A stretch of 64,000 nucleotides of DNA from Chara braunii. Taxonomy: Eukaryota > Plantae > Charophyceae. This document shows, in pieces, positions 26,678-54,550 of this stretch. The position numbers and the translations under genes were made by a program. Numbering within the stretch: position 1 is the first letter of the stretch; each line of letters starts with the position of its first letter. The stretch covers positions 6,479,957 to 6,543,956 of the forward strand of contig BFEA01000007.1 in assembly GCA_003427395.1 (NCBI GenBank), given 5' to 3'. Under the pieces are notes generated by a model that saw only the letters and a list, made by a program, of their open reading frames with translations, was not told where the DNA came from and made no database searches.

Positions 26678-26684
26678 AAGGACA

Positions 26685-28350: not shown

Positions 28351-28351
28351 A

Positions 28352-31998: not shown

Positions 31999-33572
31999 GT
32001 TAACCTTCTCTCCCCTATGGTCGTCGAAGGACCGGGCGGCTGCGAAGCCCTAGCCTGGCTTACCTCCGACCGAGCCCCCGTGGCCTTGGGTTGGAGAGGG
32101 TCTCCCCACCTTCTATCTCTCACGTCCTTCCAATGGGAATTCCCCAAATTAGGGCCCCGATGTCCTCCAATTTCTCGGTCATTTCTCCAATTCCCCTGGT
32201 TTCTTGTTGGTCCTCCTCCCCAACGTGGGCTGGGGGGTCCCGGTGGCGGCCTATCGTTGTCGCGAGGACCGTCGTTCCTTTGGGTGCGTATACTTCGGAG
32301 AGCCATGTCAAGGCTTTCCTTCATGTATTCCCGGACGTCTACTCCCCCTCCCGTAAAGACGACCTCGGCGACCTTCTCAAAATTCGTCGAGTCCCTGGGC
32401 CCCTTCTCGAGGATTTCTTTCCTCTTTTCCTCGGGTAGGTGTAACATAAACATGACACACCTATCCACTTCAGACAGCATCCCCCAATCTACCAAGGCTT
32501 GGGATAGGCGCTTGAACCTTCTAGTGAAGGCCACCAAGCTCTCCTATTCCCCCCTTGATACCCGGCGTAGCCCTTCTATTGTCGGAATCAAGTCATCGCA
32601 AGCGAAGGTCCGCAGAAGGCTACTCTTGAAGGTGTTACACCTCCCATCTATCGGGTATATTACCCTAATGGCCTGATCCAGTTCGGGATCCGAGTGCTGT
32701 ATGAAGTGGTCGATCCACTCCTTTTCTGATAACTTCTTTCGGAATGCATAACTTTCTCATTTTTCGACGAACCTCGTCACATCTCGCCCATTAAAGTAGA
32801 GTGCCTCGAGGCCCAGGTGTACATCGTAGTAGGGGACTCGTCGATCGTTATATCGACAGAAGTAGGGGCCTTCCGCTGGCCCGTCTAGTACCGGATCGTA
32901 GGGCTTGTACCAAACGAGGACTAGTTCCTCCATCTGCGATCGAGCCCCCGGAGGCCCCCAGGGTTCCTCCTCGTGGCGGCCTCTATCATTTGGTTTTTCA
33001 CGTTCCCAACGCGCTGGTCCTCGGCCCCTACACCCCCTCTAGGTGTCTCTGAACCCCCCCACATTTCTCCCTATTGCTTCCTCCATCATCCATGTAGGGT
33101 TCGTTTCTCGCCCGGGTCACCTTCGCGGTCCTCCGCCAGTCTTTCTCCGTTGCTCCTCTCCCAATTCTCTCCTTCTTAAGCTCCCCTCTTCATCCCTTCT
33201 AGGTGCCCAACATCCCAGCCTTTCACGCGGGGATTTTTGCCCCTCTCCGGCTCTCTCTTCCGCGTCCTCTTGATCTGCCCATCGGGTCTCAACAAGGAAG
33301 CCCTTCGAGGCCTCTGTCGTCCTTTCTCTCACTGGTACTCGCGGCTTCACCTCCCGGTGCAGACGTTTCTCGGTACTTGTTCGCTGCCTTGCGGCTCTTT
33401 CTCCGAGAGATATTTCCGGGCTCCTTACGGCCCTACCCATCGCCTCCATCCCTTCGGTCACCCCCTCGGTTGCCTTGCTTAACCTCGCTCCCAATTCGGT
33501 ATCTTTCTCGCCTTGCCCCATGTCAGTGGTCTCAGGTGGTTGGTAGTGTCTGGGGTCCACCTCACTCTCCAT
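31999..33572 (-). pseudogene. gag: Gag N-terminal/capsid region with in-frame stops
   Basis: FNGRDVTRFVEK...ESLVAFTRRFKRLS; in frame with the 30165-31520 ORF once the 31553-31998 insertion is removed; start uncertain. Confidence 0.8.
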
Positions 33573-34434
33573 GCACCCTATTGCTAACTTCTAGTCGCCC
33601 TCCTCGCTAGTGTCACTGTCCCGTTCTTGAACTTTTTTCTTCCTGACTTGACTCTCGATTTTCACTGTCGCCTGCAAATTCCTTGCTAGTTACGGTCCAC
33701 CAAGAGTCGCGCACTCGCTTCTCCTTGCAAGCTGCTAGCGCGAGATTGCCAACCTCAAGATTGAAAATACTCCTAATGCCTTCTTGAAAACACCGTTTAA
33801 TCAACTCTCTATCCACCTCTCTGGCCTGCCCTCGAAACAAAGGTTTGATAAATTCTCTGAGTAACGCCCACCACTCGAAGTCAGTATCTTCCAGCGATTC
33901 CTAGCATCGGGTGAACAACTCGGAGCCCTTCTCCTCTCCTAGGGGGAATTTTTCAGTTACCTGCCCCCTATTTTGAACCCTCCTCACTGCTACGTCATTG
34001 GGGTAGAGCAACCGGTAGTCCCAAGTAGGGATTTCCCAGTCCGGCCGTGAGCCGCATGTGGAATCTCTAGCCTTCCCCGGTATTCGACCTGTCCTCCACA
34101 CGTTCTTCAGCGGGGCCCCCTCTCAAAATTCTAAGCCAATCCAGCGCTCTTTTGGCGATGTCCAGGGGGTCTTTTCCTTCTGCTAATTCGGTTGCGAAGA
34201 CTTGTCTGTCGTAGTGAGACAGGAAGATTTCGGCCTTCCGCGTGCGAGTACCTCTTTCGAAAACTACTGAAAACCGAACAAGCGTCTCTCACCCGTAGAT
34301 CTCAAAGAATTCGACAACAGTCTCTCCCTCCTCTCTACTCTTGGAGAGGGTTACTCCATACCTACCCCTCGACTTCAAGGCTCGTTCCAAGGTTCCGACA
34401 GGGTTCCCCCTATCATATCTAATCATTGACAATT

Positions 34435-35029
34435 TTATCTTACCTGCGCTAACCTCTCGGCCGCCTCCGCCAACGAGTCTTCAGACCTCTCTCGAGCGCC
34501 CTCGCCTTGATCGTGTATTGCTTGTTGCAGGGTTTTTTCGTACTCCTCCTCGAACTTTCTCTCGACCTCTAGCAGCGGTTCTCTTCGCGTCCTTTGGAAC
34601 CGCACCCCTCCTGCCTCACTGACAGAAATCGAGAACCTTGCTAATGTGGTCCAGGAACTCCTTTTCCACAAGGCCAATCGCCGGATTTCAACAAGGAATT
34701 ATTTTTTTGCTCGAGCCGTCTCTCCCCAAGCCCCATAGCTAGTTCCGCACCTCCTTCTACCTCGACCTCAAACCCGCCGTCCCGAGTCTCCAACTCCCAA
34801 GTTATCGAATTTGAGCTAAAGCTCGCTCTCATACCTATCTTTCTCCCGAAAGCAGCTCCTCCTTTAAATCGTTGAATATCTTAACCGTCGATGTCTCAAG
34901 GGATTTGATCCGGTGTAAAGATCCCGGTCTGGCTCTCCTTTTCTCTTCCCAGCAGAGAGTCGGGATCCTATACAATTCCGCCCTCACCCTCTCTAGGCCC
35001 ACTAGTTCTCCTTCGTCAGGTTCGCTCAT
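34435..35029 (-). pseudogene. Decayed accessory ORF(s), Glu/Leu/Arg-rich
   Basis: Chained frames 35029-34835, 34832-34641 and 34677-34435. Confidence 0.45.
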
Positions 35030-35480
35030 GCCTCAAGTTCCTTCTCCGACATGCAATAGCGACCCGAATGAGATCCGAGGGGTCTAGCCCTTCCAAGCCT
35101 GCCTCACAGATTTCCCCCAAGTATCTCCACGAGACGGACAATACCCTCACGTTTCGACCCCAGCCTTCGAATGCGTAACCGAAGTCTTCTAAGGAGGACC
35201 CATTGTTCTGATGCGGATTGTGCAAACACCAAAACAACAGGGCGTACAAGTCTGACTCGGTGAACCGAAATTGATTCAAGATTGAGACTCTACGTTCCAC
35301 CGCTCTTTTGACCGCATCGGAGGGGTAGACTCGCTCGAAGATGAAGCGGGGAACTTCCACCGGCTGGCTGGTAATAAATAGCGGCACCTCTTCCCAACCT
35401 GCGTACTCCACTCGATACACCCTTTTGTACTTCTGGCGAGGCCTCACTTCCCCGACTATGCTCTCTAGACGACGTCTCAT
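35016..35480 (-). CDS. Accessory ORF (154 aa; PxF[VI]F...C motif family)
   Basis: ATG 3 nt after the previous stop; PRFIFERV...FTESDLYALLFWCLHNP. Confidence 0.65.
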   Translation of the reverse strand: MRRRLESIVGEVRPRQKYKRVYRVEYAGWEEVPLFITSQPVEVPRFIFERVYPSDAVKRAVERRVSILNQFRFTESDLYALLFWCLHNPHQNNGSSLEDFGYAFEGWGRNVRVLSVSWRYLGEICEAGLEGLDPSDLIRVAIACRRRNLRHERT

Positions 35481-35483
35481 GGC

Positions 35484-35768
35484 TCACGCGTTTAAGAGAG
35501 GGTCCTCCCCTAACTTCAGACTTTGAATTACCTCGAGGAGTCCCTCCTTCGAGAGGAAGATCTTAGCTTCCCCGATCACTAAGCCTTTTTCAATACCCAC
35601 TGTCAATCGGACAAACGCCTTTTCCTGGCGGATTTCGGACACTTCCGTTAGAACGATTCGTGTTAGAACTTCCAAACTTGCCTTCGGTAGTGTGACGCGA
35701 ACGACCACTCCTGCCTCCTCGATAGGCTCCACCGAGGCCCAAAGGGTCCCCGGAATCCTTCTTATCAT
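35484..35768 (-). CDS. Accessory ORF (~94 aa)
   Basis: TGATG stop/start overlap at 35770-35766. Confidence 0.6.
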   Translation of the reverse strand: MIRRIPGTLWASVEPIEEAGVVVRVTLPKASLEVLTRIVLTEVSEIRQEKAFVRLTVGIEKGLVIGEAKIFLSKEGLLEVIQSLKLGEDPLLNA

Positions 35769-36031
35769 CACCTCGTCTGAGGCTCGTACCCCCTACGGTT
35801 TGTTACTTGTTCTTCCCCGAAGAGACGAGCGTAGGGGACGTCAGCGACGTGTGCCCTTACTCCTTCGAACTCTCTCAATCGCTCCAAAATCCCCAACAAT
35901 TCTCTCTCTCCCGGTATTTCCGAGTCCACACACCGGGTGTAAAGCCAGAACAAACCCAAAGTTCGGACCCCAAACCGATGGGCAGACCGGAGCACTTCTA
36001 CCACCCTCTCTTCTGAATCTCGTAGGAGTGT

Positions 36032-36412
36032 TCATGCCAAAAAGTTTGGCAGAGCCACGTGGAGTACCTTCGAGGCGTGGGGGATTTCTCCCGGTTCAGC
36101 AAACGCCACTAGTGTTGATAATTCGAAGGTGCCTTCCTCGTAACCTTTCAGGACTAAGTCGTTAGTCACCTGCCTAGCCAATTCTCGGTACCCCGTGTGT
36201 ACCTCCCGGTCGGTGACCAATCCCCTCCAGACCTCGGTCCACGAATCGTCGTCCATAAAAATTGTCGCGTGTATCTCGAGAAACCTGCCGATATGCGGCG
36301 GACTACCCCTTCGCACTCCTTCCTGCCACGTCAATCTACACGCCCTAACCCACACGTAAGCGCCCTCCTTAATTAATCCCCCCTTCTCATCACTCATACA
36401 ATAAGGTGTCAC
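36032..36412 (-). CDS. Accessory ORF, 5' end probably frameshifted
   Basis: Globular-looking 126 aa; its stop overlaps the next ATG (ATGA). Confidence 0.55.
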   Translation of the reverse strand: MTPYCMSDEKGGLIKEGAYVWVRACRLTWQEGVRRGSPPHIGRFLEIHATIFMDDDSWTEVWRGLVTDREVHTGYRELARQVTNDLVLKGYEEGTFELSTLVAFAEPGEIPHASKVLHVALPNFLA

Positions 36413-36591
36413 TCGAGGGTCCCCCGGGACCAGGATTTGGCCCCCCTCACTGGCCTCTATCGTTTCGATACCTCATTGTTGCTAAGAGCGAATCTGACCA
36501 TCTACCACGGCCGTCTGAACACCCACTCATAGTAGGTCTTCGGGGAGAGGGTAACAAACTTCTCTAGGGACCCAAGCCTCCTATAAATCCC

Positions 36592-37164
36592 CTAGAGCTT
36601 TGTTCGAGGAGGGGCCTCATGGCAGATACAATGGGTGTAAAGTAGCCACAAGGGTCTAAAAGGCAAACCCAAACTCCTCCCTCTTTCTAGGAGCCTCACT
36701 ATCTTATCCTCGTTTGATCCTAAGAACACAAAACATGGAGTCCTTACGGTCACCGGATAACCCGCCCTTGGAAGCTCACCCTCCCGCGCGAATCTTTCCG
36801 CTTTTATCGCCACAAAACAAAACTCCTTCCGAGTCATAACTATCCACCTCCTTTTTACTTCTCTCACCTCTTGGAGCAATAGATCCAGCCCACCTCCTTG
36901 GCCTAAGACCAGGTGTACCACGATCCTCGCCCAAGCGGCTGGTTCGATGAAGATTATAGCGGTGACTTTGAGGCCTGCCCCTGTCGCTTCCTTCCTCACT
37001 TCCTCTAACTCTATCCACACAAAATTTTTCCCCGTAGTGACTTCTCCACCCTCCAATTTCCTCCAATTGGGGGCCTCCCCGTTACTCGGGACCAGGCTAC
37101 AAATCCCTCGCTTGTCTAAGGGGAACTTGACAAAACGACCGAGCTCCTTGTCAAAAAGAACCAT
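36592..37164 (-). CDS. Accessory ORF (190 aa; probably extended to ~36502 before a nonsense change)
   Basis: TGA-ATG junction; PCFVFLG...FRPLWLLYTHCICHEAP. Confidence 0.65.
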   Translation of the reverse strand: MVLFDKELGRFVKFPLDKRGICSLVPSNGEAPNWRKLEGGEVTTGKNFVWIELEEVRKEATGAGLKVTAIIFIEPAAWARIVVHLVLGQGGGLDLLLQEVREVKRRWIVMTRKEFCFVAIKAERFAREGELPRAGYPVTVRTPCFVFLGSNEDKIVRLLERGRSLGLPFRPLWLLYTHCICHEAPPRTKL

Positions 37165-37521
37165 TCATGATCTCTCTCCGATTCCAAACACCCTTTGGTA
37201 ACAGTAATCTCGCCCACCTTCATGATCTCTCTCCGATTCCAAAGAGATTCTCCTGCGAATCCGGTCGACCCTAACCACATATGACACTGGGTTATTTACA
37301 CAATAGGAGAAGTACCAATGGAGTGACTGAAAAGACAGTCCCCTCCTTCTCTCCCGCCTAATGGATTTTACGACCTTCTCGTACGAGGCCCCCTCCCCAC
37401 ACACTCTCCGGAAGACAAAGGACGGAAAGATGGCTTGGACACACCCCGTAGCGCAAGGGTACTCCTTGTCCCGAGCACAAGTTACCCGCAAGCGGAGCGG
37501 CAGATGGTGCCGAAGGGGCAC
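37165..37521 (-). CDS. Small accessory ORF (PxF[VI]F...C motif family)
   Basis: PSFVFRRV...FQSLHWYFSYCVNNP; stop abuts the next ATG. Confidence 0.6.
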   Translation of the reverse strand: MPLRHHLPLRLRVTCARDKEYPCATGCVQAIFPSFVFRRVCGEGASYEKVVKSIRRERRRGLSFQSLHWYFSYCVNNPVSYVVRVDRIRRRISLESERDHEGGRDYCYQRVFGIGERS

Positions 37522-37554
37522 TTCTTCAAAAACCTATTTTAGGATAGGCCCTAC

Positions 37555-37905
37555 TCACACCTCCCAATGATCCGCCCGATACCACCCTAGTGCCCAGTGG
37601 GTGATGTATTCCACCCAGGCCTCTTGACCCAAGTAGACTGTGCCTTCCGCACGAATCGCTGTTTGTCGGGCCTTCTGCCCGTTCCTAGGTTTATTCCTGG
37701 TCTACTGATCCCCCTCCCAAATTCCCACGACGAAACGCGCCCAGAGAAAAAAACCCTTCTCGAGTTCCACACCTTTTTCGTGCCCGACTAAATATCTCTC
37801 CGTACGATGGTCCAAAGGGACGTTGAAGCACTCTCTCTCCTTGTGAAGGTCGGCCTTCTCGATTTGGATTCTACCGTCGCCAATCGCTTCTACAATCCTA
37901 ACCAT
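37555..37905 (-). pseudogene. Small accessory ORF with an internal TAG at 37704
   Basis: ATG overlaps the end of the previous ORF; the frame stays open after the single stop. Confidence 0.5.
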
Positions 37906-38273
37906 GCCCTTCCCTGGCTTTGGACCACCTCCTCAATAATCCCTACTAACACCTTCCAACCGTCCGACCCGTCGAGGTAGGCTTCCAGTATCGTTGGGGC
38001 AGGTCGCTCTCCTCGCCGAAAGGTCCGGCAACCCAGCGTATAAAAATACCGAATCCCGAAATTTCTTGAAAGTTCCCTCTTTAGCTGAGCATGACCAACC
38101 GCCTCTTCCCAGCTATCAAGGAAGTCTTCCCCTCGATCCGTCCCTTCTTCCACATTGAGTGCTAGATCAAAATCTTCGGCCCATAGATAATAGTCGTAAC
38201 ACCATACGTCCACACCCCCACGACTACCCATGATAATGCCTGTCGGCTCAACCTCGATAACTCCTAGGCTCAT
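37890..38273 (-). CDS. Small accessory ORF of unknown function (127 aa)
   Basis: ATG 7 nt after the previous stop; strong protein-level similarity to the upstream ORF. Confidence 0.75.
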   Translation of the reverse strand: MSLGVIEVEPTGIIMGSRGGVDVWCYDYYLWAEDFDLALNVEEGTDRGEDFLDSWEEAVGHAQLKRELSRNFGIRYFYTLGCRTFRRGERPAPTILEAYLDGSDGWKVLVGIIEEVVQSQGRAWLGL

Positions 38274-38280
38274 AGGCCCC

Positions 38281-38631
38281 TTACTCCCCCACTATCTCCT
38301 TTACGATCGCGACCAGCACTCTCCACCCCTTTGATCCGTCGAGATACGCGTTCGGAATTACGAGTGCGGGTCGCCCGCCCCTAGGGTAGGTCCGGTACCC
38401 CAAAGCGTAGAAGTATCTAAACCCGTACCCCCTCACCTCAGCTCTTTCTATGCGAGAGTAACCGACTGCCTCCTCCCATCCACGAAGGAAATTTTCTCCT
38501 TGATCTTGCCCTTCCTCTACGTAAATGGCAACGTCAAAATCTCCCGTCCATAGACGAAAGCTGTAGCACCACACGTCGATTCCTCCGTAGGTACTCACAC
38601 TAGTCCCTTCCGGAACCGCCTCTAGGCTTAT
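38281..38631 (-). CDS. Small accessory ORF of unknown function (paralog of 37890-38273); start codon probably mutated ATG->ATA at 38631
   Basis: GGIDVWCY...DFDVAIYVEEGQDQGENFL aligns with the neighbouring ORF. Confidence 0.7.
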   Translation of the reverse strand: MSLEAVPEGTSVSTYGGIDVWCYSFRLWTGDFDVAIYVEEGQDQGENFLRGWEEAVGYSRIERAEVRGYGFRYFYALGYRTYPRGGRPALVIPNAYLDGSKGWRVLVAIVKEIVGE

Positions 38632-40084
38632 GTGCCCATCCTAATCAAGGAAAATCTCCTTCGTTGCCTTTACTTTGGTCACTCGAGAGACCACCCCTAC
38701 CCTGCAAGGAGAAGGCACCTGAGAGCCCAGCGGGATCAAATGGACCAGAGAAGGAACGTCGTCTCACTCGGCTACCCTCCTGTCCTCCCCCGCTGAAAGG
38801 TCCTCCCACTTCCAAGCATAGAAACTAGCCGCGAACACAGGTTATCCCCGAGGAAGGGTGGCAACCCCCTCCCCGTAGTCGGACCGAAGTCACACACCAG
38901 TGCCCTATGTCCCCCACCGAACCGACCTCTAGTCCTAAGTTAGCCTATCCGGCACCACGCCCCAACTCAGCCTACCTCGAGCGTGGAATTACCCGGGTCC
39001 CATGACTTTTATCTGCCTATCGATCGATAATCACTAGCCTACCTACTCCATCTCATTCTCCTCCTTGGATCGCGAACTCTTCTCACTTTGTTCCCTTCTT
39101 TCTCTTCTCCACCGTCTGACTCTTTTCTCTCTCGGAATCCGAATATTTAATCAGGGTTTCACAAAAAAAGGGTGGGGAAGCAGAGCTTTAGCAAGAGAGT
39201 ATCTCAGGTTTGGCCACTTTAAATACGTACCTTGCAGTCTTCGACTTTTTCAGTATTCGTTCTCGTAGTCGCAGTAGTCCTCGAGATCCGAGTCCGAGAA
39301 ATCGACAAGGCACCAGTCCACTCAAGACTCGGCCTCCGATTCCTCGTCCAAGGTACCCCACGTATCTCTTCTCTCTTCTTCCCGAATTAGTTCCCTACCC
39401 CTTTCGTTCTCTACGGCGGTTGAAGTTCCCTCGACCCTTTGTCCCGGAGCCCGAAGCACTACCCTCCTCGCCCCCAAGTCCCGAACAGCACCCAAGTGAG
39501 AACTTCGCTCCCTCGCGGGAGTCGCGTCCCATGCAGGTATTGTCCACAACCCGCGTGGGTCGAGAACAGAAAACCCAGCCCCCACTTGAGAAGCTCGTTC
39601 CCTTGTAGGAGTCTCGTCCCGTGCGGGCGACGTCCACAACCCGTGCGGGTCGAGAATATTAGGAAAACCCTTTTCTCTTTGGACCAGCCCTCTTGGATCA
39701 CAAACTGATGGCGTCCCTGGGCCCCCTCGAACCCCCGTTTCCTCTCTCCTCCTAGTGTCCACTATCTCTTCCCCACGCGCGGACCCACTCACGCAATTTT
39801 CCTTGACGACTCTTCGTCCCCCTCTTTGGTTGTTTTTCACCCTCATTTAAACCCAATAAGCAAACTGTTTTACCCTCTTAATTAGTGAATTTTTAGAAAT
39901 AAATGCACAAAAAAAATCACGTTGTCGAGCGCATCGGCCCTCACGTGAAAACGAGGGCCCTCTCGGCTATGTCACGCAGGAGTGTACCTAAAAACATAAC
40001 GTTTAGAGACAACTCGGGAACGATGCATACTGTTCCGCGAACCACCGAGACGGACGCGGTTGCTTCGCTCCTTCGCCGCTCTAG

Positions 40085-41166: not shown

Positions 41167-41679
41167 CTACAATAAATCCAAACGTGCGAGTTCGTCGTCG
41201 TCGAAAATCAAAGTAGACCTTCGTCCACATCGCATGACTTTCACAATCCGAGTATTATAGAAGGAGGTCATCCGAGAGGCTAGTCTCCAAACTATAACTC
41301 GGAGAGGTCGATTAAGTCCAAACAGGTGTCGAGTCTCTGTGTCCCGGATCCGGACGACGCTGAAACGCCTACCGGACGAGGTAATCTTGATACTCACAAT
41401 GACTCGAGAGAGACATTGAAGGTTACCCGCGCAGTGGAAATACAAAGTATAACCGTAAAGCTCGTCGGAAGTTCGATCCATGTTGGCTCTGAAATCTGCG
41501 CGAGTATTAGGAAAAAATCCCTCGCCACTTTGAAGCAGTCCAACGAAGACGAACCAGTCGATAGGAGATCCATCTCTTACTCGTAAAAGTCGCGCTGCAC
41601 TCCTGATGAGATCCTCCTCGGGTGTATCACGGACCAGAAGATACCTCGGGATTGTCAAGTCTCGTCGTGCTCCAGGCAT
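41167..41679 (-). CDS. Hypothetical protein (170 aa), ATG directly after a splice acceptor
   Basis: gactgatttggattcgttctgatacgcag|ATG; 23 nt after the previous stop. Confidence 0.65.
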   Translation of the reverse strand: MPGARRDLTIPRYLLVRDTPEEDLIRSAARLLRVRDGSPIDWFVFVGLLQSGEGFFPNTRADFRANMDRTSDELYGYTLYFHCAGNLQCLSRVIVSIKITSSGRRFSVVRIRDTETRHLFGLNRPLRVIVWRLASRMTSFYNTRIVKVMRCGRRSTLIFDDDELARLDLL

Positions 41680-41702
41680 CTGCGTATCAGAACGAATCCA
41701 AA

Positions 41703-42215
41703 TCAGTCACGTAAAAACTCCTCAAGTTCTTCCGCTTCATTTTCCAATTCATGATCATATAATGTTTCAGCCCCTATAATTGCGTACCTATTGGCACGTA
41801 TCCGCTCCGCGTAGTATATGCCAAAAATTGAGCCTTGTCGCTTGTTCAGCCAAAGCACGTAACGGACGAACATCAACCTTATTTCAGGGATTTCGTCCAC
41901 TCGTGTGTTGATCTCATGGGGCTGCAACACCACCAGGTTCATATTGACGAAGTGACGCTCGGGCAATGGCGGTGCGAACTCGTAATGAAGAATATCCATG
42001 CCGTTATCACTCCTGAAAACAAGTCGCCTAGGGGGTCTTTGCGCACTACCACCCCAAAATCGCGGAACGTCCTCCTCAGAATATAATTCTGACAGATTAT
42101 AAATAAGTCGGCCTATCCTTTCTACCCTCACTCTATCACGCCTTTGGAGTTCAACTCTCTCTGTTGCCGCATCACGATTGTTGAAAAGGAATAGTTTCGT
42201 GGTTCTCATAGCCAT
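41703..42215 (-). CDS. Hypothetical protein (170 aa), ATG directly after a splice acceptor
   Basis: ttctttttctttcag|ATG; intact, non-repetitive ORF. Confidence 0.65.
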   Translation of the reverse strand: MAMRTTKLFLFNNRDAATERVELQRRDRVRVERIGRLIYNLSELYSEEDVPRFWGGSAQRPPRRLVFRSDNGMDILHYEFAPPLPERHFVNMNLVVLQPHEINTRVDEIPEIRLMFVRYVLWLNKRQGSIFGIYYAERIRANRYAIIGAETLYDHELENEAEELEEFLRD

Positions 42216-44119
42216 CTGAAAGAAAAAGAAGCCAAATGTGTTTTGAGTTAAACTTTTGCCCTTGAGTATTATTCGGTTTTTGTCTTCCTTACAGCCCGTG
42301 TTTCTTATGACACGACTAACCACGTCAGGAGTATCTAACCGTACTCCGTTCAGCTAATAGGACATGAGTCAGGCTGCTTGTGACGCCAACTCTCCATACA
42401 GTAGTGGTACCTAGGATGACCACTTAAAACAGGATTGCTAAGGCAATTTTCCTTTTTCGCAAGGCATCAAGAAATAATTTTCTTCCGTGTAGATGCCTTT
42501 TCCATTACCCTAAGAGGTGGTCTGGGATACTTCTTCTCCTCGCCCGAGTATAAAACTCGGATCTCAGAAGTCGGGCCGTCTCCACCGAATCGGCATAGTA
42601 CCCCCCCGCAAGCGATCCGCAAAGCGGTCCACTCTGAGTCGATAACAGGGCCGGCCCCTAAGGCAACGAACCCCCGCCCCAGATGCCTCCTAGAAAAAAA
42701 GAAAAACACCTACACGGCAGACAAGTAAAGTCTTGCTGCATAGCGTCAAAGTAAACTTAGACGAAGAAAGAGGAATCGTAGAAAGATAGAATCATTCAGA
42801 CTGACAGGCATAGATGGAAGAGGGTTATTCGGGAAAGAATGGGTAACCTCAAGAATAAGTCTAAACCAAGTTGAACTTCTCTTCCTTATGCTCGCTTCGT
42901 TTCTCGTCGTTTTCTCTTTCTTTTATTTATACATAGAACACAAGCACAAAGATGAAAAGTCAATCATTCTTTCACCGCCATAACCCTCATCCATTTCAGT
43001 CCACATGTCGTACCTACAGTCAAAACCCAACGACACACAGACCACCATGCATTCCTTTACCATTGTCAGACTCCCAGTTATACACGCAAAAACACACATC
43101 CTCTTCCCTTTTTCAATGAACATTCAGTGAAAAACAGGTCAAAGCAAGTGTGGGTTCACTCAAGTGTGAAGGGAACTGAGTCAATTTAACTGACTGACCT
43201 TGAGTGAAATTGAAGAAACGGCCCACTCAGGAAGACCGTGTAAATCACACTCAAGAGAAGACGATCGTCACAATGACTCGCCCGCAAAACAATCCACACC
43301 ACTCCTTAGAACGATCGCTTGTCGCGACACCCTGCGTCGCCGCAGTAAAATTATCGCAGCGCTCCCGCACCACAGCTGGTTAAACCGGAGTAACCGTCGA
43401 AAGATTTCGACAGTGCTACCGCACCACTACCGAAAAACCCGGAACCGCCCCCGTAGAGAACCCGGTGGCGCTTCAGCACCACCACTGAAAAACCAGGCTT
43501 GTTGCTGCAAAAAAAAAAAAAACGGCGGCGCTTCCGCACCACCGCTGAAAAACCAGGCCTGTTCCCACAAAAAAACCGGCAGTGCTTCCGCACCACCGCT
43601 GAAAAACCAGGCGCGCCACTGCAAAAACACCGGCAGCGCTTCGGCAGCACTCTTGTACTACCACAGTAAAAGCCTGTGCCGCCGCAGCAAAATTTCGGCA
43701 GCACTTTCGTACTACCGCAGAAAAAGTCTGTGCCGCCGCAGCAAAATTTCGGTAGCACTCTCGTACTACCGCAGTAAAAGCCTGTGCCGCCTCAGCAAAA
43801 TTTCGGCAGCACTCTCGTACTACCGCAGTAAAAGTCTGTGCTGCCTGCCGTAGTACCTCAGTGCCACTGGGCCTGTCCCGTGGGACCAACACCAGTCAAA
43901 GGGGAGGGGAACAGAGTGCTCCCTGCCTTGGCTATGGCTGCCCAGTCCTCCTCCTGGTGGTCCTCTGCAGTCCTCCAGCTCCTCCTCACATTGCCTCAGC
44001 AGTCCTCCAGCTCCTCCTCACGTTGCCTCAGCAGCAGCTTCAGCAGCCACAACACTCAAGTGTGCCCGTCACACACTGGCAGCACGAGTGCTTTGTGTGG
44101 CAGCTGGGGGGCAGCTGCC

Positions 44120-44128
44120 TTTTTTATA
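44120..44128 (-). promoter_or_regulatory. TATA box candidate (second copy at 50030-50038)
   Basis: Minus strand ccaaTATAAAAAAggc in a GC-rich context, pointing toward the accessory ORFs. Confidence 0.45.
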
Positions 44129-46190
44129 TTGGCTGAAGAGAGCTAGACGTCACTCCATCCCCCAGGCAAAAACGCGGGATCACAGTGAGCCCTTGATCTG
44201 GCCTAGATTCAGGGCTGACTGTGGCCGCACCACAGCCACAGCCTTAGTGTGGGGCAGTTTCTTTAACTGCCCTATTTTCTTTTTTTTTTTCTTTTTCCCA
44301 GCTCTCTCGGAATCTGGCGAGATAGCTGGTTTCCTGCCATTTCCAAAAGTGTTTTTCTTTTATTTTTCTGATAAGGGGTTGGAAAGTTACAGTCCGTTAC
44401 AGTTTGATGTATCTGGACCCTTTTTCCAGGGCAGATACATCGGGGAAAAGGTTGTATCTAGCCTTTTCCTTAGCGGCCCTTAATTTTCCAGGCTCCCTGC
44501 AAAAACGAGAGCCTGACAGTTTCCTCTGGCAGCTTGTGCCAAAGGTAGGACCACGTGAGGACAAGTGTCCTCACAGAAAATAAAGAAAAGAAAAAGAAAA
44601 ACTAACTTTCTTATTCCTAATGAACCTGGCTTTTACCTCAGCCAGGTTCGTGTTGTTGCATGCAATAGCCTTCCCTTATTTCCCTCTGCCTTCCCCTGAA
44701 AAAGGGGCCCCTGAAAAAGGGCAGGGCAGTTGGCAGGTTGGGAGGAGTAGGACCTCCCCCTCCCAACTCCCACGTCCCTCTCTCTCATTCTCCCACGCGA
44801 GTACTGTCGGCCGTGAGATTCAAGATCTCGCGGCCACAGTGTGTTGGGCAAAAAAAAAAAATGAAGTGGGAGTTTTGTGCTCCCACACAGTCCTGAAGGA
44901 CTGTTTTTTTCCTACCATGAGGCAATTGCCTCGTTCGTTCTTTTTTTCTNNNNNNNNNNNNNNNNNNNNNNNNNNNNNNNNNNNNNNNNNNNNNNNNNNN
45001 NNNNNNNNNNNNNNNNNNNNNNNNNNNNNNNNNNNNNNNNNNNNNNNNNNNNNNNNNNNNNNNNNNNNNNNNNNNNNNNNNNNNNNNNNNNNNNNNNNNN
45101 NNNNNNNNNNNNNNNNNNNNNNNNNNNNNNNNNNNNNNNNNNNNNNNNNNNNNNNNNNNNNNNNNNNNNNNNNNNNNNNNNNNNNNNNNNNNNNNNNNNN
45201 NNNNNNNNNNNNNNNNNNNNNNNNNNNNNNNNNNNNNNNNNNNNNNNNNNNNNNNNNNNNNNNNNNNNNNNNNNNNNNNNNNNNNNNNNNNNNNNNNNNN
45301 NNNNNNNNNNNNNNNNNNNNNNNNNNNNNNNNNNNNNNNNNNNNNNNNNNNNNNNNNNNNNNNNNNNNNNNNNNNNNNNNNNNNNNNNNNNNNNNNNNNN
45401 NNNNNNNNNNNNNNNNNNNNNNNNNNNNNNNNNNNNNNNNNNNNNNNNNNNNNNNNNNNNNNNNNNNNNNNNNNNNNNNNNNNNNNNNNNNNNNNNNNNN
45501 NNNNNNNNNNNNNNNNNNNNNNNNNNNNNNNNNNNNNNNNNNNNNNNNNNNNNNNNNNNNNNNNNNNNNNNNNNNNNNNNNNNNNNNNNNNNNNNNNNNN
45601 NNNNNNNNNNNNNNNNNNNNNNNNNNNNNNNNNNNNNNNNNNNNNNNNNNNNNNNNNNNNNNNNNNNNNNNNNNNNNNNNNNNNNNNNNNNNNNNNNNNN
45701 NNNNNNNNNNNNNNNNNNNNNNNNNNNNNNNNNNNNNNNNNNNNNNNNNNNNNNNNNNNNNNNNNNNNNNNNNNNNNNNNNNNNNNNNNNNNNNNNNNNN
45801 NNNNNNNNNNNNNNNNNNNNNNNNNNNNNNNNNNNNNNNNNNNNNNNNNNNNNNNNNNNNNNNNNNNNNNNNNNNNNNNNNNNNNNNNNNNNNNAGAAAA
45901 ATTAAAAAAAAAATCCAACTTACCTCAGAAAACGGCTCGACGTTGTAGAAACGGCGCCGTTTTCTTCAGGGACTATAAGTCTCTTTTTTCTCAGTGCGCC
46001 ATCTGGCGCAGTTCGTTTTTGCTTGTTTGTTTGTTTGTTTGTTTATTTGTTTGTTTGTTTGTTTGTTTGTTTTTTAGAATTCTCGTTGGCTTATGCCAAC
46101 GATCGTGCTGTGTTCGTGGGTTCACCCACGAACTGTTGCAATGAAGACCCGAATTCGAGTCCAAATGGACTCAAAAAATAATATAAAAAA

Positions 46191-46248
46191 AAAATTGACT
46201 ATTTCTCGATTTATGCGTGTCATCCTTGCGCAGGGGCCATGCTAATCT
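46191..46248 (-). ncRNA. U6: U6 snRNA 3' half (no 5' stem-loop or ACAGAGA box)
   Basis: Minus strand reads AGATTAGCATGGCCCCTGCGCAAGGATGACACGCATAAATCGAGAAATAGTCAATTTT, the plant-type U6 3' half as I recall it, followed by a T run. Confidence 0.93.
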
Positions 46249-47647
46249 CGCGCGCGGCTGATCTCAACCGCGAGATCTTCTTGATCGGACGACCGAGATC
46301 GACCGTGCCCGAAAGACTGGGTTGCTCCAAAAGGACCTAGCCCGGTAGTTACAGTTTCTCAGATTCGATCCTGGTGTCTGCTGGGTGGTAGTCGGGTGAC
46401 GTAACCTACTGGGCTAGCTCTTGTTTCACACTAAACAGGAGCAGCTCTTCAATATGAAGAGCTAGCCCAGCTGATTCTCCTGCCTGCGGCCTTGCAGGCT
46501 CCTCCTGTATGTGGCCTAGCAGGCCTGCCCAGGCTGTGGCCTAGCAGGGCTGCCCAGCCTGTGGCCTGCCGGCATTCCTGCCCGTGGCCTACCCATACCA
46601 GTTAGCCGCGTGATCGCGGCTTGGTCGGCCATCGAACCGGGTAAGCCTTGGCATTGGCCTATCGGCCCCAAGGCTCGACGTCAAACCCCGCGGCCTGTGC
46701 CGCGGCCTTATACCCCGCGCAACCGTCTTTTTAGCCCACTTAAGTCCTGAATCGCGCGGCTGCTACTAGGTGTAACTCTAGTCTTTCCATGACTGCACGC
46801 TACTGCGGTCTCGTCGAAAAACCCGTGGATGACAGTGTTGACTTTCGCTATCCCGTGCGGACGTCGATGTCGTCTTGCGTTGACGACGTAAGGTTCTAAA
46901 AGGTTTAGGTTTCTCAGTCATAGCGCTGGTCTAAATAAACGTTTGGCAAACATCAGTCTCATCAAGTCCTTCAATTCAACGCAAGAGTCGGACAACGTCC
47001 CACGTTCAAAAACACCGGCAAATAACCTTGTCAGGGTTTTTGCCTCGACAGCAATCCCAAACCCCATTGAACGACGTCCTCGTCGTTCACCCTATATTAG
47101 TCAACAATACAGGGCTCTCTGGATTCTTATGGAACTCTTTTCAACAAAATTTCTTTCAATCGAAAATAAGTCGAAGCTTATAACCAAAATCCGAGTTATT
47201 GCCTCGGTAATCTGAAATTCAATCATCCTTAATTGGAATGGTACCAGATGTAGCCTCTAGCAAGCCTTTCACCAAAACCTGAATTTATACCGGTTTCAAG
47301 TTCCGGAATTACTAAAATATTCGGAAACTTTGTCTAAATGGTCCCAGCATCATCCCACTGGTGGCAAATCTAAACATTATTTTAGTCTCTCAGAATGGTA
47401 CTGGAAATAGCCTCCGGCTAGCCTTCTAAACCTCAGTTGGCTAATATTTACATTTATCTAAGAGATCAGGTTTAACCCCCTGACGGGTATTTCAAAATAA
47501 ATAACCTTCTGAGCGGCCCAGACAGAATCTGAACCAACCATTCATGAGAAAAATCATTTATCAAAATTCCTTGTTCAGGTTTTGTATCCCATTCCAATTA
47601 CGAGTTATCACATATGACATTTTTCCTGCATGCTTTGTGATATGCGT

Positions 47648-48036: not shown

Positions 48037-50833
48037 AGAGCTCACTACATCAGGACTCATCATAACATGTTTTGTGAATAACTCATAGTTATGCCACAAG
48101 CCATATAATGCAAATTACATATAATTTTCCTAGAACTTTTTTTTTTTTTACAACGAGAATATACATCAAATAACAACATACATTTTCACAGAGAGTTTCA
48201 TAACATTCCAGTCAAAAAATATTCATTAATTTGCATTGCATCACATTTCATCGAAAAAAGTAACAAGAAATCATTCAAATTTAGGAATCAACAAATTTTC
48301 GATCCAAAATCACAACATAATTCCACCGAATCGGCATAGTACCCCCCCAAAAAGCGGTCCACTCTGAGTCGATAACAGGGCCGGCCCCTAAGGCAACGAA
48401 CCCCCGCCCCAGATGCTTCCCAGAAAAAAAGGAAAACACCTACACGGCAGACAAGTAAAGTCTTGCCGCGTAGCGTCAAAGTAAACTTAGACGAAGAAAG
48501 AGGAATCGTAGAAAGATAGAATCATTCAGACTGACAGGCATAGATGGAAGAGGGTTATTCAGGAAAGAATGGGTAACCTCAAGAATAAGTCTAAACCAAG
48601 TTGAACTTCTCTTCCTTATGCTCGCTTCGTTTCTCGTCGTTTTCTCTTTCTTTTATNNNNNNNNNNNNNNNNNNNNNNNNNNNNNNNNNNNNNNNNNNNN
48701 NNNNNNNNNNNNNNNNNNNNNNNNNNNNNNNNNNNNNNNNNNNNNNNNNNNNNNNNNNNNNNNNNNNNNNNNNNNNNNNNNNNNNNNNNNNNNNNNNNNN
48801 NNNNNNNNNNNNNNNNNNNNNNNNNNNNNNNNNNNNNNNNNNNNNNNNNNNNNNNNNAAAAGTCAATCATTCTTTCACCGCCATAACCCTCATCCATTTC
48901 AGTCCACATGTCGTACGTGCAGTCAAAACCCAACGACACACAGACCACCATGCATTCCTTTACCATTGTCAGACTCCCAGTCATACATGCAAGAACACAC
49001 ATCCTCTTCCCTTTTTCAATGAACATTCAGTGAAAAACAGGTCAAAGCAAGTGTGGGTTCACTCAGGTGTGAAGGGAACAGAGTCAATTTAACTGACTGA
49101 CCTTGAGTGAAATTGAAGAAACGGCCCACTCAGGAAGACCGTGCAAATCACACTCAAGAGAAGAAGATCGTCACAATGAGTCGTCCGAAAAACAATTCAC
49201 ACCACTCCTTAGAACGATCGCTTGTTGTGACACCCTGCGTCGCCGCCGTAAAATTATCGCAGCGCTCCCGCACCACAGCAGGTTAAACCGGAGTCACCGT
49301 CGAAAGATTTCGACAGCGCTACCGCACCACTGCCGAAAAACCCGGAACTGCCGCCGTAGAAAACCCGGAGGCGCTTCCGCACCACCACTGAAAAACCAGG
49401 CCTGCTTCCGCACCACCGCTGAAAAACCAGGCCTGCTGCCACAAAAAAACCGGCAACGCTTCCGCACCACTGCTGAAAAACCTGCCCTGCCGCCGCAAAA
49501 AAAACGGCAACACTTCCGCACCACCGCTGAAAAAACCCGTGCCGCCGCAAATGTCGGCAGCACTCTCGTACTACCACAGTAAAAGTCTGTGCCGCCGCAG
49601 CAAAATTTCGGCAACACTTTCATACTACCGCAGAAAAAGTCTGTGCCGCCGCAGCAAAATTTCGGCAGCACTCTTGTACTACCGCACTATAAGTCTGTGC
49701 CGCCGCAACAAAATTTCGGCAACACTCTCGTACTACCGCAGTAAAAGTCTGTGCCGCATGCCGTAGTACCGCAGTGTCACTGGGCCTGTCCCGTGGGACC
49801 AACACCAGCCAAAGGGGAGGGGAGCAGAGCGCTCCCTGCCTTGGCTATGGCTGCCCAGTCCTCCTCCCGGTGCTCCTCTGCACTCCTCCAGCTCCTCCTC
49901 ACGTTGCCTCAGCAGTCCTACTACTCCTCACGTTGCCTCAGTAGTAGCTCCAGCAGCCACAACACTCAAGTGTGTCCGTCACACACTGGCAGCACGAGTG
50001 CTTTGTGTGGCAGCTGGGGGGCAGCTGCCTTTTTTATATTGGTTAAAGAGAGTTGGACGTCACTCCAGCCTCCAGGCAAAAACGCGGGTTCACAGTGAGC
50101 CCTTGATCCAGGGCTGACTGTGGCCGCACCACAGCCACAGCCTTAGTGTGGGGCGGTTTCTTTAACTGCCCTATTTTTTCTTTTCTTTTCTTTTTCCCAG
50201 CTATCTCGAAAGCTGGCGAGATAGCTGGTCTCCTGTCATTTCCAAAAGTGTTTTTCTTTTATTTTTCTGATAAGGGGTTGGAAAGTTACAGCCCCTTACA
50301 GTTTGATGTATCTGGACCCTTTTTCCAGGGCAGATACATCGGGGAAAAGGTTGTATCTAGCCTTTTCCTTAGCGGCCTTTAATTTTCCAGGCTCCCTGCA
50401 AAAACGAGAGCCTGACAGTTTCCTCTCGCAGCTTGTGCCAGAGGTAGCACCACGTGAGGACAAGTGTCCTCACAGAAAATAAAGAAAAGAGAAAGAAAAA
50501 CTAACTTTCTAATTCCTAATGAACCTGGCTTTTACCTCAGCCAGGTTCGTGTTGTTGCATGCAACAGCCTTTCCTTATTTCCCTCTGCCTTCCCCTGAAA
50601 AAGGGGAGGGCAGTTGGCAGGTTGAGAGGAGTAGGACCTCCCCCTCCCAACTCCCACGTCCCTCTCTTTCATTCTCCCACGCGAGTACAGTCGGCGTGAG
50701 ATTCAAGATCTCGCGGCCACAGTGTGTTGGGCAAATAAAAAAAACAAAGTGGGAGTTTTGTGCTCCCACACAGTCCCAAAGGACTGTTCTTTTCCTACCA
50801 CGAGGCAATTGCCTCGTTCGTTCTCTTTTTCTA

Positions 50834-50899
<66 letters not shown>

Positions 50900-51216
50900 T
50901 CTCTTACTTTTTCTTTTCGTTTCTTAGTCCTTTCCCCGTTTTTTTGTGCAACGGTCCTCCTTCAAAGGCCACGAACGGGGAGGAACAAGAGGGGAAAAAA
51001 AAAAAAAAAAAAAAACAGAAAAACAAAATACAAAAACTTACCTGAAATCGTCGTTTTGCGGCCGCAGCAACAACACTGCTTTGGCCACTGCTCGTGACTG
51101 TATTCTTCCGCGTTCCCGCGAAAGATTCATTCGATTATGCTCATCCTTTAGTTGGCCTCCTCGTCGAGGAGCCAACCTCAGGTAGGTTGGCAGGTAGGTA
51201 GGTAGGTAGGTAGGTA

Positions 51217-51282
<66 letters not shown>

Positions 51283-51466
51283 NAAAATTGTTGTTTTGCG
51301 GCCACAGTAACAGCAGTGGCCTTGGCCACTGCTCGTGACTGCATTCTTCCGCGTTCCCGCAGAAGATTCATTCGATTTTGCTCATCCTTTAGTTGGCCTC
51401 CTCGTCGAGGTCGTCGAGGAGCCAACCTCAGGTAGGTTGGTAGGTAGGTAGGTAGGTAGGTAGGTA

Positions 51467-51534
<68 letters not shown>

Positions 51535-51596
51535 CGTGCGCGCACGCGCGTGCGTGCGCTTGTACCTGGTCGCTATTGGTGCCAGGTTCAGGCGTT

Positions 51597-51657
51597 TGTC
51601 GACTGTCGGGGTCCAACCCCCTGATGAGTCGATGTAGCTCCGACAAAACAGTCGGCA
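51597..51657 (+). ncRNA. Type III hammerhead ribozyme with G12->A core change
   Basis: tgtcgactGTC-gggg(tccaa)cccc-CTGATGA-gtcg(atgtagctc)cgac-AAAAC-agtcggca. Confidence 0.85.
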
Positions 51658-51756
51658 CAGTTTGGGTCTCCCCCCCCCCTTTTGCATCTCTCTATTTTAC
51701 GCTTGTACCTAGGCGCCATAAGCGCCAGGTTCAGGCGCTTTTACTCGTTCAGTTGC

Positions 51757-51819
51757 TGCCCAGACTGTCGAGGCTCAGCCTCCTGATGAGTCGGTGAAAC
51801 CCGACGAAACAGTATGGCA
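51757..51819 (+). ncRNA. Type III hammerhead ribozyme, intact core
   Basis: gactGTC-gaggc(tca)gcctc-CTGATGA-gtcgg(tgaaac)ccgac-GAAAC-agt; predicted cleavage 3' of C51769. Confidence 0.92.
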
Positions 51820-52237
51820 CATGCATGCTTCGATTTGCCCGTTCGTTTCAAACAAACGGACACTCAGTCTCAAGCAAACAAAAAAAAGAAAAAAAAAATC
51901 TAAGTAGAATCTAAGAAGAAATCTAAGAAAAAGAAGAAAAGAAAATTAAAATTAAAAAATTCCAACTTACCTCCGAAAACGGCTCGACGCTGTAGAAACG
52001 GCGCCGTTTTCTTCAGAGACTATAAGTCCCTTTCTTCTCAGTGCGCCATCTGGCGCAGTTCGTTTTTGCTCGTTTGTTTGTTTGTTTGTTTGTTTGTTTG
52101 TTTGTTTGTTTGTTTGTTTGTTTTTAGAATTCTTGTTGGCTTATGCCAACGGTCGTGCTGTGTTCGTGGGTTCACCCACGAACTGTTGCAATGCAGACCC
52201 GAGTTCGAGTCTAGATGGACTCAAAAAAAATAATAAA

Positions 52238-52297
52238 AAAAATTGGACTATTTCTCGATTTATGCGTGTCATCCTTGCACAGCGCCCATGCTAATCT
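52238..52297 (-). ncRNA. U6: U6 snRNA 3' half, second copy with 3 substitutions in the ISL/U4-pairing region
   Basis: Minus strand reads AGATTAGCATGGGCGCTGTGCAAGGATGACACGCATAAATCGAGAAATAGTCCAATTTT. Confidence 0.9.
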
Positions 52298-53568
52298 CGC
52301 GCACGGCTGATCTCAGCCGCGAGATCTTCTTGATCGGACGACCGAGATCGACCATGCCTAAAAGACTGGGCTGCTCCAAATGGAGCTAGCCGGGTAGTTA
52401 CAGTTTCCCAGATTCGATCCTGGTGTCTGCTGGGTGGTAGTCGGGTGACGTAACCTACTGGGCTAGCTCCTGTTTCACACTTAACAGGAGCAGCTCTTCA
52501 ATATGAAGAGCTAGCCCAGCTGATTCTCCTGCCTGCGGCCTTGCAGGCTCCGCCTGTATGTGGCCTAGCAGGCCTTCCCAGGCTGTGGCCTAGCAGGGCT
52601 GCCCAGCCTGTGGCCTGCCGGCATTCCTGCCCGTGGCCTACCCATACCGGTTAGCCGCGTGACCGCGGCTTGGTCGGCCATCGAACCGGGTAAGCCTTGG
52701 CATTGGCCTATCGGCCCCAAGGCTCGACGTCAAACCCCGAGGCCTGCGTCGCGGCCTTATACCCCGCGCAACCCTCTTTTTAGCCCACTTAAGTCCTGAA
52801 TCGCGCGGCTGCTTACTTTAGGTAGACTAGGTGTAACTCTAGTCTTTCCATAACTGCACACTACTGCGGTCTCGTCCAAAAACCCGCGGATGACAGTGCT
52901 GACTTCCGCTATCTCGTGCGGACGTCGATGTCATCTTGCGTTGACGACGTCAGGTTCTAAAAGGTTTAGGTTTCTCAGTCATAGCACTGGTCTGAATAAA
53001 TGTTTGGCAAACATCAGTCTCATCAAGTCTTTCAATTCAACGCAAGAGTCGGACAACGTCCAACGTTCAAAAACACCGGCAAATACCCTTGTCAGGGTTT
53101 TTGCCCCGACAACGCCTCCCAGCAAGAATCTGACCTGGTTTTTCTTCTAGAAGTCGCAAGTGGGCTGAAGCTGCAAGCGGGGTTGGCGTGGACCTGCAAA
53201 ACCAAGAGATTCCAATACCCCAAGCCCCTCACACCCAAGCAACCTGGCAACCCCTCCCACACGGAAGAACACACGTCCCAACGATGCCCAAAAGGATGTC
53301 TTCTAGGAAATGTCGTCGAAAGGTCGCCGAAAAAAAGTACCGAGGAACTTCAAAGCCGAAGAGGCCGTTGAAAAAGTTGATGCCGAAACGAAAACTTTTG
53401 AAGAAACTGATGCCGAGAAAATGCCGTTGAAAAAGTTGATGCCGAAAACAAAAATTGCCGAAAAAACTGATGTCGATACCAAAAAAAATGAGCCCTCCGC
53501 TACCTGTCATGCTCGTTCTCCCTCTTACCGTAGTCCTTGAGCCGACCGAGGCCACGAGAGAAAGCCCA

Positions 53569-53586
53569 TCCCCGGCAACGGCGCCA
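53569..53586 (-). promoter_or_regulatory. Primer-binding site, tRNA-Asp
   Basis: TGGCGCCGTTGCCGGGGA, 3 nt after the LTR end ...CTGACA; complementary to the plant tRNA-Asp(GUC) 3' end, as used by Athila-type elements. Confidence 0.9.
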
Positions 53587-53589
53587 TTT

Positions 53590-54550
53590 TGTCAGCCGGG
53601 GAGCTACCCTTTGTCTCTGGTCTCAGATATCAAGGTGCTTAGTGGTCCGAAGGCTGCCCCTTTTCGCTCCACTCCCCCGGCACTAACTGTCTCAGCCTAG
53701 ACTGGGTTCGGTAGCCCTAGCATTCCCCATGGTCACCCCCTCTCCAGCCCTCTTGAGCCGGTCGAGGCCACGAGAGAAAGCCCATCCCCGACAACGGTGT
53801 CATTTTGCCAGTCGGGGAGCTACCCTTTGTCCCTGGTATCAGATATCAAGGTGCTTAGTGGTCCGAAGGCTGCCCCTTTTCGCTTCACTCCCCCGGCATT
53901 AACTGTCTCAGCCTAGACTGGGTTCGGTAGCCCTAGCATTCCCCATGGTCACCCCCTCTCCGGCCCTTTGGCGTGGCTCTGGCCTAGGCCTTCGCCCTTA
54001 TCAGACTTGCGCCCTTAGTCCAATAGCGGTACGATCCGACACCGAAAAGAATTACCGACGAACTCGGTTGCCAATGGGGAAAGGAACCCAGTTTTGAGTT
54101 GACAATGGGAGGGGGGCGAACAGTTTGGGTTTGCGGAACTGCGGTTTGGTGAAGACTAAGATTTGTTAAGTCCACGGGGCACCCATACCACGACATCAAG
54201 GTGGATAACAGTACTACGGAACTAAGTTCAGCGTTGGATAAAAGGGTCTCCTCAAATTTCGGGAACTTGGTTCAGCGCAGAGGAAACATAGTTTCTCGAG
54301 ATTAAGGGACTTGGTTCGAAGCAGAACAAAATGGAACTGGGTTCGGTGGAGGGTAAAACAGGATTTCCCAAAGTCATTAAAACTCAGTCTGGTGCAGAAC
54401 AGAACTGCACCACATGCTCGGATGAGTCTCGAGCTTCAAAGTAAAGCAAACACCTACGCGAAACTCAAATAAAACCCGGGGTGAAAAAATGAAAAGGTTT
54501 GTATGAAAGCCGACCAAAAAAAGGACGTTTGGGAGCTTGACCCGAACCGT
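53590..54550 (-). repeat. 3' portion of the 5' LTR, with a ~217-bp tandem duplication of the LTR-end/PBS junction
   Basis: Matches 21927-22670; ~53536-53752 is repeated at ~53753-53969 with a degenerate second PBS. Confidence 0.85.

Follow-up and report, generated by a model that had tools for sequence, protein, structure and literature searches.

How the 3' half of a spliceosomal RNA came to lie twice in repetitive DNA of the charophyte Chara braunii, and whether it does anything there, is the question raised by a 64,000-nucleotide (nt) stretch of contig BFEA01000007.1 (assembly GCA_003427395.1, forward-strand positions 6,479,957–6,543,956; hereafter the window, with coordinates counted from its first letter). 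A preliminary description of this sequence had noticed the 3' half of U6 small nuclear RNA (snRNA) in both units of a repeat and proposed that it formed part of a new chimeric RNA. Here we argue that the U6 half is probably a captured passenger in the U3 region of the long terminal repeats (LTRs) of a giant-LTR Ty3/Gypsy lineage of Chara, acquired by repeated template switching onto co-packaged U6 and passively inherited thereafter.

An Rfam search of the window bore out the presence of U6 sequence in both repeat units, with matches to RF00026 at 46188–46249 (56.9 bits, E = 1.2e-11) and 52237–52298 (46.0 bits, E = 2.2e-8). The two matches lie on the minus strand, the preliminary description having given no strand, and cover solely U6 positions ~46–105. 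A 24-nt U6 core occurs twice in the window at no more than three mismatches, versus 0.00 occurrences expected in shuffled sequence. The first copy (46188–46248, minus strand; about nt 47–106 of U6) has a core identical to authentic U6, the reference being non-animal eukaryotic contaminants in metagenome-assembled genomes (MAGs) and not Chara's own U6 gene. The second copy (52237–52297, minus strand) carries the three substitutions previously reported, together with a 1-nt length difference immediately before the U tract; under the standard pairing of the U6 internal stem-loop (ISL), two of these substitutions each abolish a C-G pair without compensation. As had also been described, the segment runs to a T tract (10 T in copy 1, 8 T in copy 2) with no poly(A), and its tail is of the plant/algal type. 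The 5' stem-loop and ACAGAGA box are absent by Rfam and nhmmer, with at most a weak remnant, and no separate U6 5' half was found anywhere in the window, nor was any target-site duplication (TSD), poly(A) or long interspersed nuclear element (LINE) tail belonging to the U6 piece itself found beside it there. The U6 half of the window is not a U6 gene.

The carrier was identified from the anatomy of the repeat. Comparison of the window with itself yields two copies, 42581–47050 and 48322–53111, that are 91–95% identical. When 53112–53620 is joined with what lies left of 39923, the 5' leader of a Gypsy element becomes continuous again, matching the corresponding empty site in the related loci L122 and L124. 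The segment 39923–53111 is therefore a single insertion of 13.2 kb; its terminal pentamers are inverted (TG..CA), and a 4-bp duplication flanks it (ACGT at 39919–39922; ACGC, one transition away, at 53112–53115). The start of another LTR, at window 14788, corresponds both to the right end of the insertion and to the junction at 47050; it is preceded by the same polypurine tract (PPT)-like sequence, a feature common to the relatives. The left end of the insertion matches LTR ends that, in L123 and at window 20744, are followed by a tRNA-Asp-like primer-binding site (PBS). The reading direction of the element is therefore that of the minus strand, in the order of a 5' LTR shortened by internal deletion (53111–48322; 91–95% identical to its partner), a 1.27-kb internal remnant (48321–47051; homologous to 14789–20740 of a related element) with the PPT-like tract at its end, and a complete 7.1-kb 3' LTR (47050–39923) with TG..CA termini. 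Both LTRs contain N gaps, the one in the 3' LTR being of 945 N. The PBS has been deleted from this copy, the homologous LTR ends carrying the tRNA-Asp-like one, and so has gag-pol; the full order of protease (PR), reverse transcriptase (RT), RNase H (RH) and integrase (INT) is found only in the related host element. Judged from these alignments, the two repeat units represent the LTRs of a single internally deleted Ty3/Gypsy-type element inside another Gypsy element, and the earlier view that a mobile element carried and amplified the U6 half holds, as it sits in both LTRs of that element. A shorter LTR ending at ~42590 with a tRNA-Ala-like PBS was considered and rejected: the LTR extends to 39923, and a third copy of the family is colinear across that point.

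The U6 half lies 814 nt from the LTR start, in the sense orientation relative to the LTR. A candidate for the canonical LTR TATA box, recognized from its sequence, lies further along the LTR (50030–50038, copy at 44120–44128; minus strand), and the U6 half would thus precede the start of the genomic RNA and belong to U3. This position bears on the notion that the junction marks the edge of a U6-gene-specific transposon insertion or a broken U6 gene. Insertions of Dada-U6 do look like a U6 half beside foreign DNA, so that partial U6 adjoins a mobile element in both cases, yet Dada-U6 inserts at U6 nt 65–70 with a TSD of 6 bp, and the remaining half of U6 is found at the opposite end of the transposon (PMC3706591). 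In the window U6 is interrupted at nt 46/47, its 5' half is missing, a DDE transposase was not seen and the U6 piece lies 0.8 kb inside an LTR. Site, TSD and enzyme differ, U6 being the target of Dada-U6 and not its cargo; we give this origin almost no credence, and a Dada-type insertion at the window locus is ruled out by the LTR anatomy.

Whether the U6 half is maintained was examined with three copies of the window's LTR family, two of them from one element and the third at the C. braunii locus L139, which was reached through an open reading frame (ORF) encoded in the LTR (homologue CBR_g49381). Between the two window LTRs, U6 has accumulated 4 events in 60 nt, versus 4.5–5.6% in the flanks. 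Between copy 1 and L139, the 45-nt U6 core differs by 7 substitutions and 1 insertion, its divergence being 15.6% against 18.5% for the upstream flank (Fisher p = 0.84), and an A-rich run replaces the U tract in L139. The preliminary description had named equal decay of U6 and flanks as a mark of passive capture, and both comparisons point that way. Loss of CpG in L139 is no greater than in the window copy (13 vs 20 sites). The damage was thus probably incurred while transposition of the lineage was still going on, and L139's lineage probably continued to move with a damaged U6.

The relatives of this LTR family supply the second line of evidence. The homologous loci compared all come from the same assembly and represent about 0.24 Mb of Chara sequence beyond the window. 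Their LTRs have a 45-nt start and U5 in common, and U3 is largely unalignable among them, but U6-derived units occupy the same zone in the same orientation. L140 has a near-full-length U6 unit (50.9 bits) with an older unit just upstream, and L145 (two copies of which are an exact duplicate, counted once) has four units of about 62, 59, 61 and 88% identity, the freshest being last; their E values are 0.4, 5, 0.08 and 5e-19, and the first two, marginal alone, are in register from U6 +1. These tandem, graded units lie at L145 19248–18700 and L140 2366–2602, the freshest in each being the 3'-most, and the last units of the two subfamilies have a common 3' extension. Across the lineage, identity of the units to authentic U6 falls at about 60%, at 69–88% and at 100%, and no unit in L140 or L145 retains an intact catalytic set. 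In these relatives U6 +1 is the first position of the units and no U6 promoter precedes them, which is what copying from RNA would be expected to give.

U6 is not the only cargo. In L121 (BFEA01000283.1), a 7.45-kb solo LTR, U3 contains a diverged fragment of cytosolic large-subunit (LSU) rRNA (8380–8515, minus strand; RF02543 positions 822–950; E = 3.6e-8) 640 nt from the LTR start, and in all cases the offset of the U6 or rRNA cargo from the LTR start is 0.64–1.3 kb. Sense U6 was not found in the LTRs of L121, L143 and L124 or in the one at window 14788. A 14-nt exact antisense match to U6 nt 51–64 at L143 18117–18130, ~1 kb into U3, may be due to chance. In L143, gag-protease, an RT-homologous region and RNase H lie between an LTR pair of 96.5% identity, with no match to integrase in that locus; the lineage therefore has coding members. 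Solo LTRs (L121, and L140 at 7.6 kb) each have a 4-bp duplication, and 4-bp TSDs are found in three insertions of the lineage. The 4-bp target sites of the window element, L121, L139, L140 and L145 all contain CG (ACGT/GCGT, CCGC and GCGT, with single flanks ACGT and GCGG), which suggests a CpG target preference.

These related LTRs also affect how the window copy itself is read. Immediately 5' of the U6 half is a stem-loop (46260–46300, copy 2 at 52309–52349; minus strand) of 12+4 bp with predicted pairing probability of 0.98–1.00, and all 16 pairs are kept in 3/3 copies, with 3 one-sided changes (U-G/U-A or G-C/G-U); three sequences are too few to show covariation. Since sibling LTRs hold near-full-length U6, this stem-loop and the 45 nt upstream of it may be a remodelled U6 5' half. 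In the window copies those 45 nt align in register with the U6 5' half, weakly (shuffle p = 0.007–0.35), and in L139 nothing of the kind is seen upstream of the hairpin.

Location in U3, sense orientation, several levels of decay, the lack of a carried promoter and the presence of another abundant RNA in a sibling are all direct observations, and repeated capture would account for them as follows. Abundant host RNAs would be co-packaged in the particles of the element, and reverse transcriptase, during minus-strand synthesis through U3, would jump onto U6 and back, after which the new U3 would be copied to both LTRs. Older U6 remnants may provide homology that favours fresh captures beside them, and each unit would decay neutrally until renewed capture replaced it. 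The window's family may have copied the 3' half alone, or it may have received full-length U6 whose 5' half then gave way to the local hairpin; we consider these two routes about equally probable. The U6 piece would be transcribed only inside longer RNA polymerase II (Pol II) RNAs, as part of the genomic-RNA 3' end and perhaps of a U3-initiated spliced RNA, and so would have no free oligo-U end and no snRNA action.

The proposed mechanism has precedents. Among the RNAs packaged by murine leukemia virus (MLV) and Rous sarcoma virus (RSV) is U6, and template switching incorporates host RNAs into reverse transcripts (PMC4997597); the same mechanism is proposed here for the Chara LTRs, although the retroviral events are known from rare recombinants and the outcome in Chara is a heritable trait of U3 that apparently recurs from one subfamily to another. 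U6 is also the favoured template-switch partner of LINEs, 5'-truncated forms included (PMC4476161). In these chimeras, as proposed in Chara, template switching joins U6 to retroelement sequence, but each of them is a single insertion, dead on arrival, that has U6 at its 5' end and its own TSD, whereas the Chara U6 is internal to the LTR and is propagated with the element (PMC4476161). The preliminary description had held the retained 3' half to be the opposite of known U6 chimeras, a contrast that is weaker than stated, 5'-truncated U6 being the rule for platypus L2 (PMC4476161).

Entry of the U6 half as a ready-made chimera of a non-LTR or Penelope-type element, or by capture at the DNA level, together with hammerhead ribozymes and microsatellites, would be equally passive. 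In its favour, 5'-truncated U6 chimeras are known for L2 and RTE (PMC4476161), C. braunii has hammerhead-bearing Penelope-like elements (10.1101/2021.04.23.441226), and related hammerheads with an associated motif also occur outside the window's LTR. We nevertheless think this route quite improbable, given that TSD and poly(A) are absent around the U6 piece, that the hammerheads are antisense to it and that sibling LTRs have U6 without hammerheads. The ribozymes concerned are two of type III on the strand opposite to U6 and the LTR, at 51762–51815 (plus strand; intact core) and 51600–51654 (plus strand; one core change), with two also in L139; they would be cargo separate from U6.

Several points weigh against passive inheritance. 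The evidence base is three family copies, of which one element supplies two, plus about 0.24 Mb of further Chara sequence, and the recurrence of U6 in three subfamilies could reflect a benefit rather than a mechanism. Each of the 8 core differences that separate copy 1 from L139 is on the L139 side (two-sided binomial p of about 0.008), copy 1 having the core of authentic U6; a perfect core has been kept or refreshed in the window's lineage, as selection would also give. In addition, a TATA-like block and several hairpins are conserved, and the region may be a functional transcript.

The strongest competitor built on such observations holds that selection keeps the U6 piece as a cis element of the retrotransposon RNA and that lineages refresh this element once it has decayed. 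U6 nt ~47–85 (AGC triad, ISL and U4-pairing strand) would bind U4 or U6-binding proteins, and the bound segment would help to retain, protect or package the genomic RNA or to keep it unspliced. The presence of U6 in U3 of three subfamilies whose U3 otherwise diverges, the perfect core of copy 1 with its 0-versus-8 polarity against L139, the fact that nt 47–85 are the overlap of all fresher units, and conserved splice donors close by all agree with it. The units of L139, L140 and L145 are, however, broken in the ISL, AGC triad or ACAGAGA box without compensation, sense U6 was not seen in L121, L143, L124 or the LTR at window 14788, and in L121 a piece of rRNA occupies the same zone. On balance we consider a selected cis element unlikely, but not so unlikely as to be set aside; if true, it would mean that a retrotransposon can exploit the spliceosome in a new manner. 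A bolder variant, in which the lineage depends on a spliceosomal RNA mimic (fresh U6 entering a polarised U3 array, with the U4-pairing/ISL segment binding snRNP factors and controlling splicing, retention or packaging), is more doubtful still. Were it true, a captured snRNA would be a working part of a retrotransposon, with a built-in record of its acquisition.

The preliminary description had favoured a different function, namely a discrete chimeric RNA terminating at the U tract and working as an LSm or U4 decoy, as a re-targeted U6 or through a borrowed stabilising 3' end. In its most explicit form, an RNA of ~500 nt would run from a TATA-like motif in U3 to the U6 U tract and serve as an LSm2-8/U4 decoy or re-targeted U6, a Cassandra-like variant included. 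The TATA-like motif, a candidate U3-internal promoter, belongs to a conserved block situated ~470 nt upstream of U6 (46709–46716, copy 2 at 52758–52765; minus strand), T runs between this block and the U6 tail do not exceed 4 in the window's family, and folding is strong (z = −6.6 for 46185–46800). Several features argue the other way. The upstream sequence element (USE) was not found upstream of the U6 half with the consensus applied, which is that of land plants and may not be Chara's; near the U6 half there is no B box or tRNA and only a single isolated A-box-like match. Runs of T4 (both window copies) and T4–T6 (L139) precede U6, L139 has lost the U tract, and a 5' splice-donor-like site kept in all three copies lies ~270 nt downstream of the tract (45918–45925, copy 2 at 51965–51972; minus strand), with a second donor-like site near 51040. 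No conserved guide replaces the ACAGAGA box, the loop in question varies, and a guide/target pairing with a 13-nt complement at 50705–50717 was rejected, the complement not being maintained in L139. Taken from the sequence, these signals appear to fit Pol II read-through better than an RNA polymerase III (Pol III) RNA ending at the U tract, and with the decay and the lost U tract they leave the discrete RNA improbable and its suggested functions unsupported.

The structural claims made for that RNA fared unevenly. The 8-bp helix proposed in cis is complementary at 8/8 positions, but its predicted pairing probability is 0.00, against 0.98–1.00 for the stem at 46260–46300, and 5/8 pairs remain in L139; this helix was rejected. 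The dense stems upstream are real, as the z score above indicates; they do not make up a 450-nt domain but extend, on either strand, over about 3 kb of the LTR (53111 to ~50000). Strand-specific selection on structure was rejected, mean z being about equal on the two strands. Short near-perfect hairpins fill ~3 kb of U3 on both strands in window 50000–53111 and in L139 4378–7450; some are lineage-specific, so hairpins keep arising, and the sibling LTRs lack this excess.

LTRs that harbour small-RNA sequence are known from cases of 5S rRNA and tRNA, in which that sequence provides a promoter. The TRIMp3 elements Cassandra, Helenus and Ajax bear sequence derived from small-RNA genes in their LTRs and measure 0.3–1.3 kb as whole elements (PMC10886601, 10.1101/2023.07.14.548913). 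The window element resembles them in having small-RNA-derived sequence in both LTRs of a deleted LTR element and in that it probably does not code for a working RNA. It differs in that the Chara cargo is U6 (LSU rRNA in a sibling) and not 5S rRNA or tRNA, that no 5S- or tRNA-type internal Pol III promoter boxes were found (U6 has no internal A/B/C-box promoter to retain), that the LTRs reach 7–7.6 kb and the window element 13.2 kb, and that units can be tandem and graded in decay in a lineage with gag-pol-bearing members. Given these differences in promoter and size, we do not class it in TRIMp3. No report of U6 inside LTRs was found in the literature searched, which did not extend to Repbase and most subscription journals.

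Capture that is lineage-wide, tandem and graded was unexpected. With tandem U6 units of differing age in a single U3 zone, and rRNA in a sibling LTR, these LTRs would amount to a natural record of co-packaging and template switching in vivo. The idea, already old, that snRNAs packaged by LTR elements are converted into genomic copies becomes directly countable. A practical corollary is that Rfam counts of U6 in Chara include LTR passengers.

Retrozyme LTRs span a few hundred bases and carry the ribozyme in the sense orientation. The Chara LTR, like retrozymes and the hammerhead-bearing Penelope-like elements of C. braunii (10.1101/2021.04.23.441226), has type III hammerheads in a retroelement repeat, but antisense and within a 7-kb LTR, unlike retrozymes. 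The two in L139 (5637–5691 and 6217–6271) have intact cores and are antisense to the LTR. Members of this type III family adjoin microsatellites in the window, at 51600–51815 (plus), 13598–13653 (minus) and 10284–10337 (plus), as well as in L139. A recurring ~50-nt motif accompanies them (window 4389–4435, 13992–14048, 51099–51155 and 51340–51396) and is tandem in L139 20676–21413; this hammerhead/motif family is probably Penelope-related.

The interrupted host Gypsy element occupies 21927–39922 (minus strand), with extra ORFs, gag-PR-RT-RH-INT and a 3' LTR, and its PBS and 5' part continue at 53112–54550. All close matches to its reverse transcriptase (28352–29617) are from Chara braunii. A 216-bp tandem duplication (window 53536–53967) spans its LTR end and tRNA-Asp-like PBS, and a long inverted-repeat cluster with a folding z of about −23 lies between its gag and protease ORFs (31587–31979), a similar cluster being found in L140 (12080–12824). 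Arrays of 100–220-aa ORFs without Pfam matches occur on the minus strand at window 41170–42215 and 33120–38640, two inside the LTR and several upstream of the host-element gag (kept in L124 at ~66% DNA identity). The two in the LTR each encode 170 aa (minus strand): for 41706–42215 the protein search found no homologue, and for 41170–41679 the only one was C. braunii CBR_g49381, within the third LTR copy. A protein search with a spurious ORF over the U6 region gave nothing useful.

Outside Chara, a metagenome scan for the 16-nt junction pattern returned chance matches only, and the U6 core was absent from the viral contigs searched. Thirteen bacterial GTDB MAG contigs contain eukaryotic U6 genes as contamination (14 loci, L125–L138); the five with an animal-type U6 tail (L125, L129, L130, L132 and L136) were scored for tail identity and GC content alone and then left out of the analysis, and no contig was taken for human. 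Satellite arrays of 91–92-bp and 81-bp units, in more than 50 copies, occupy 58698–63483 of the window.

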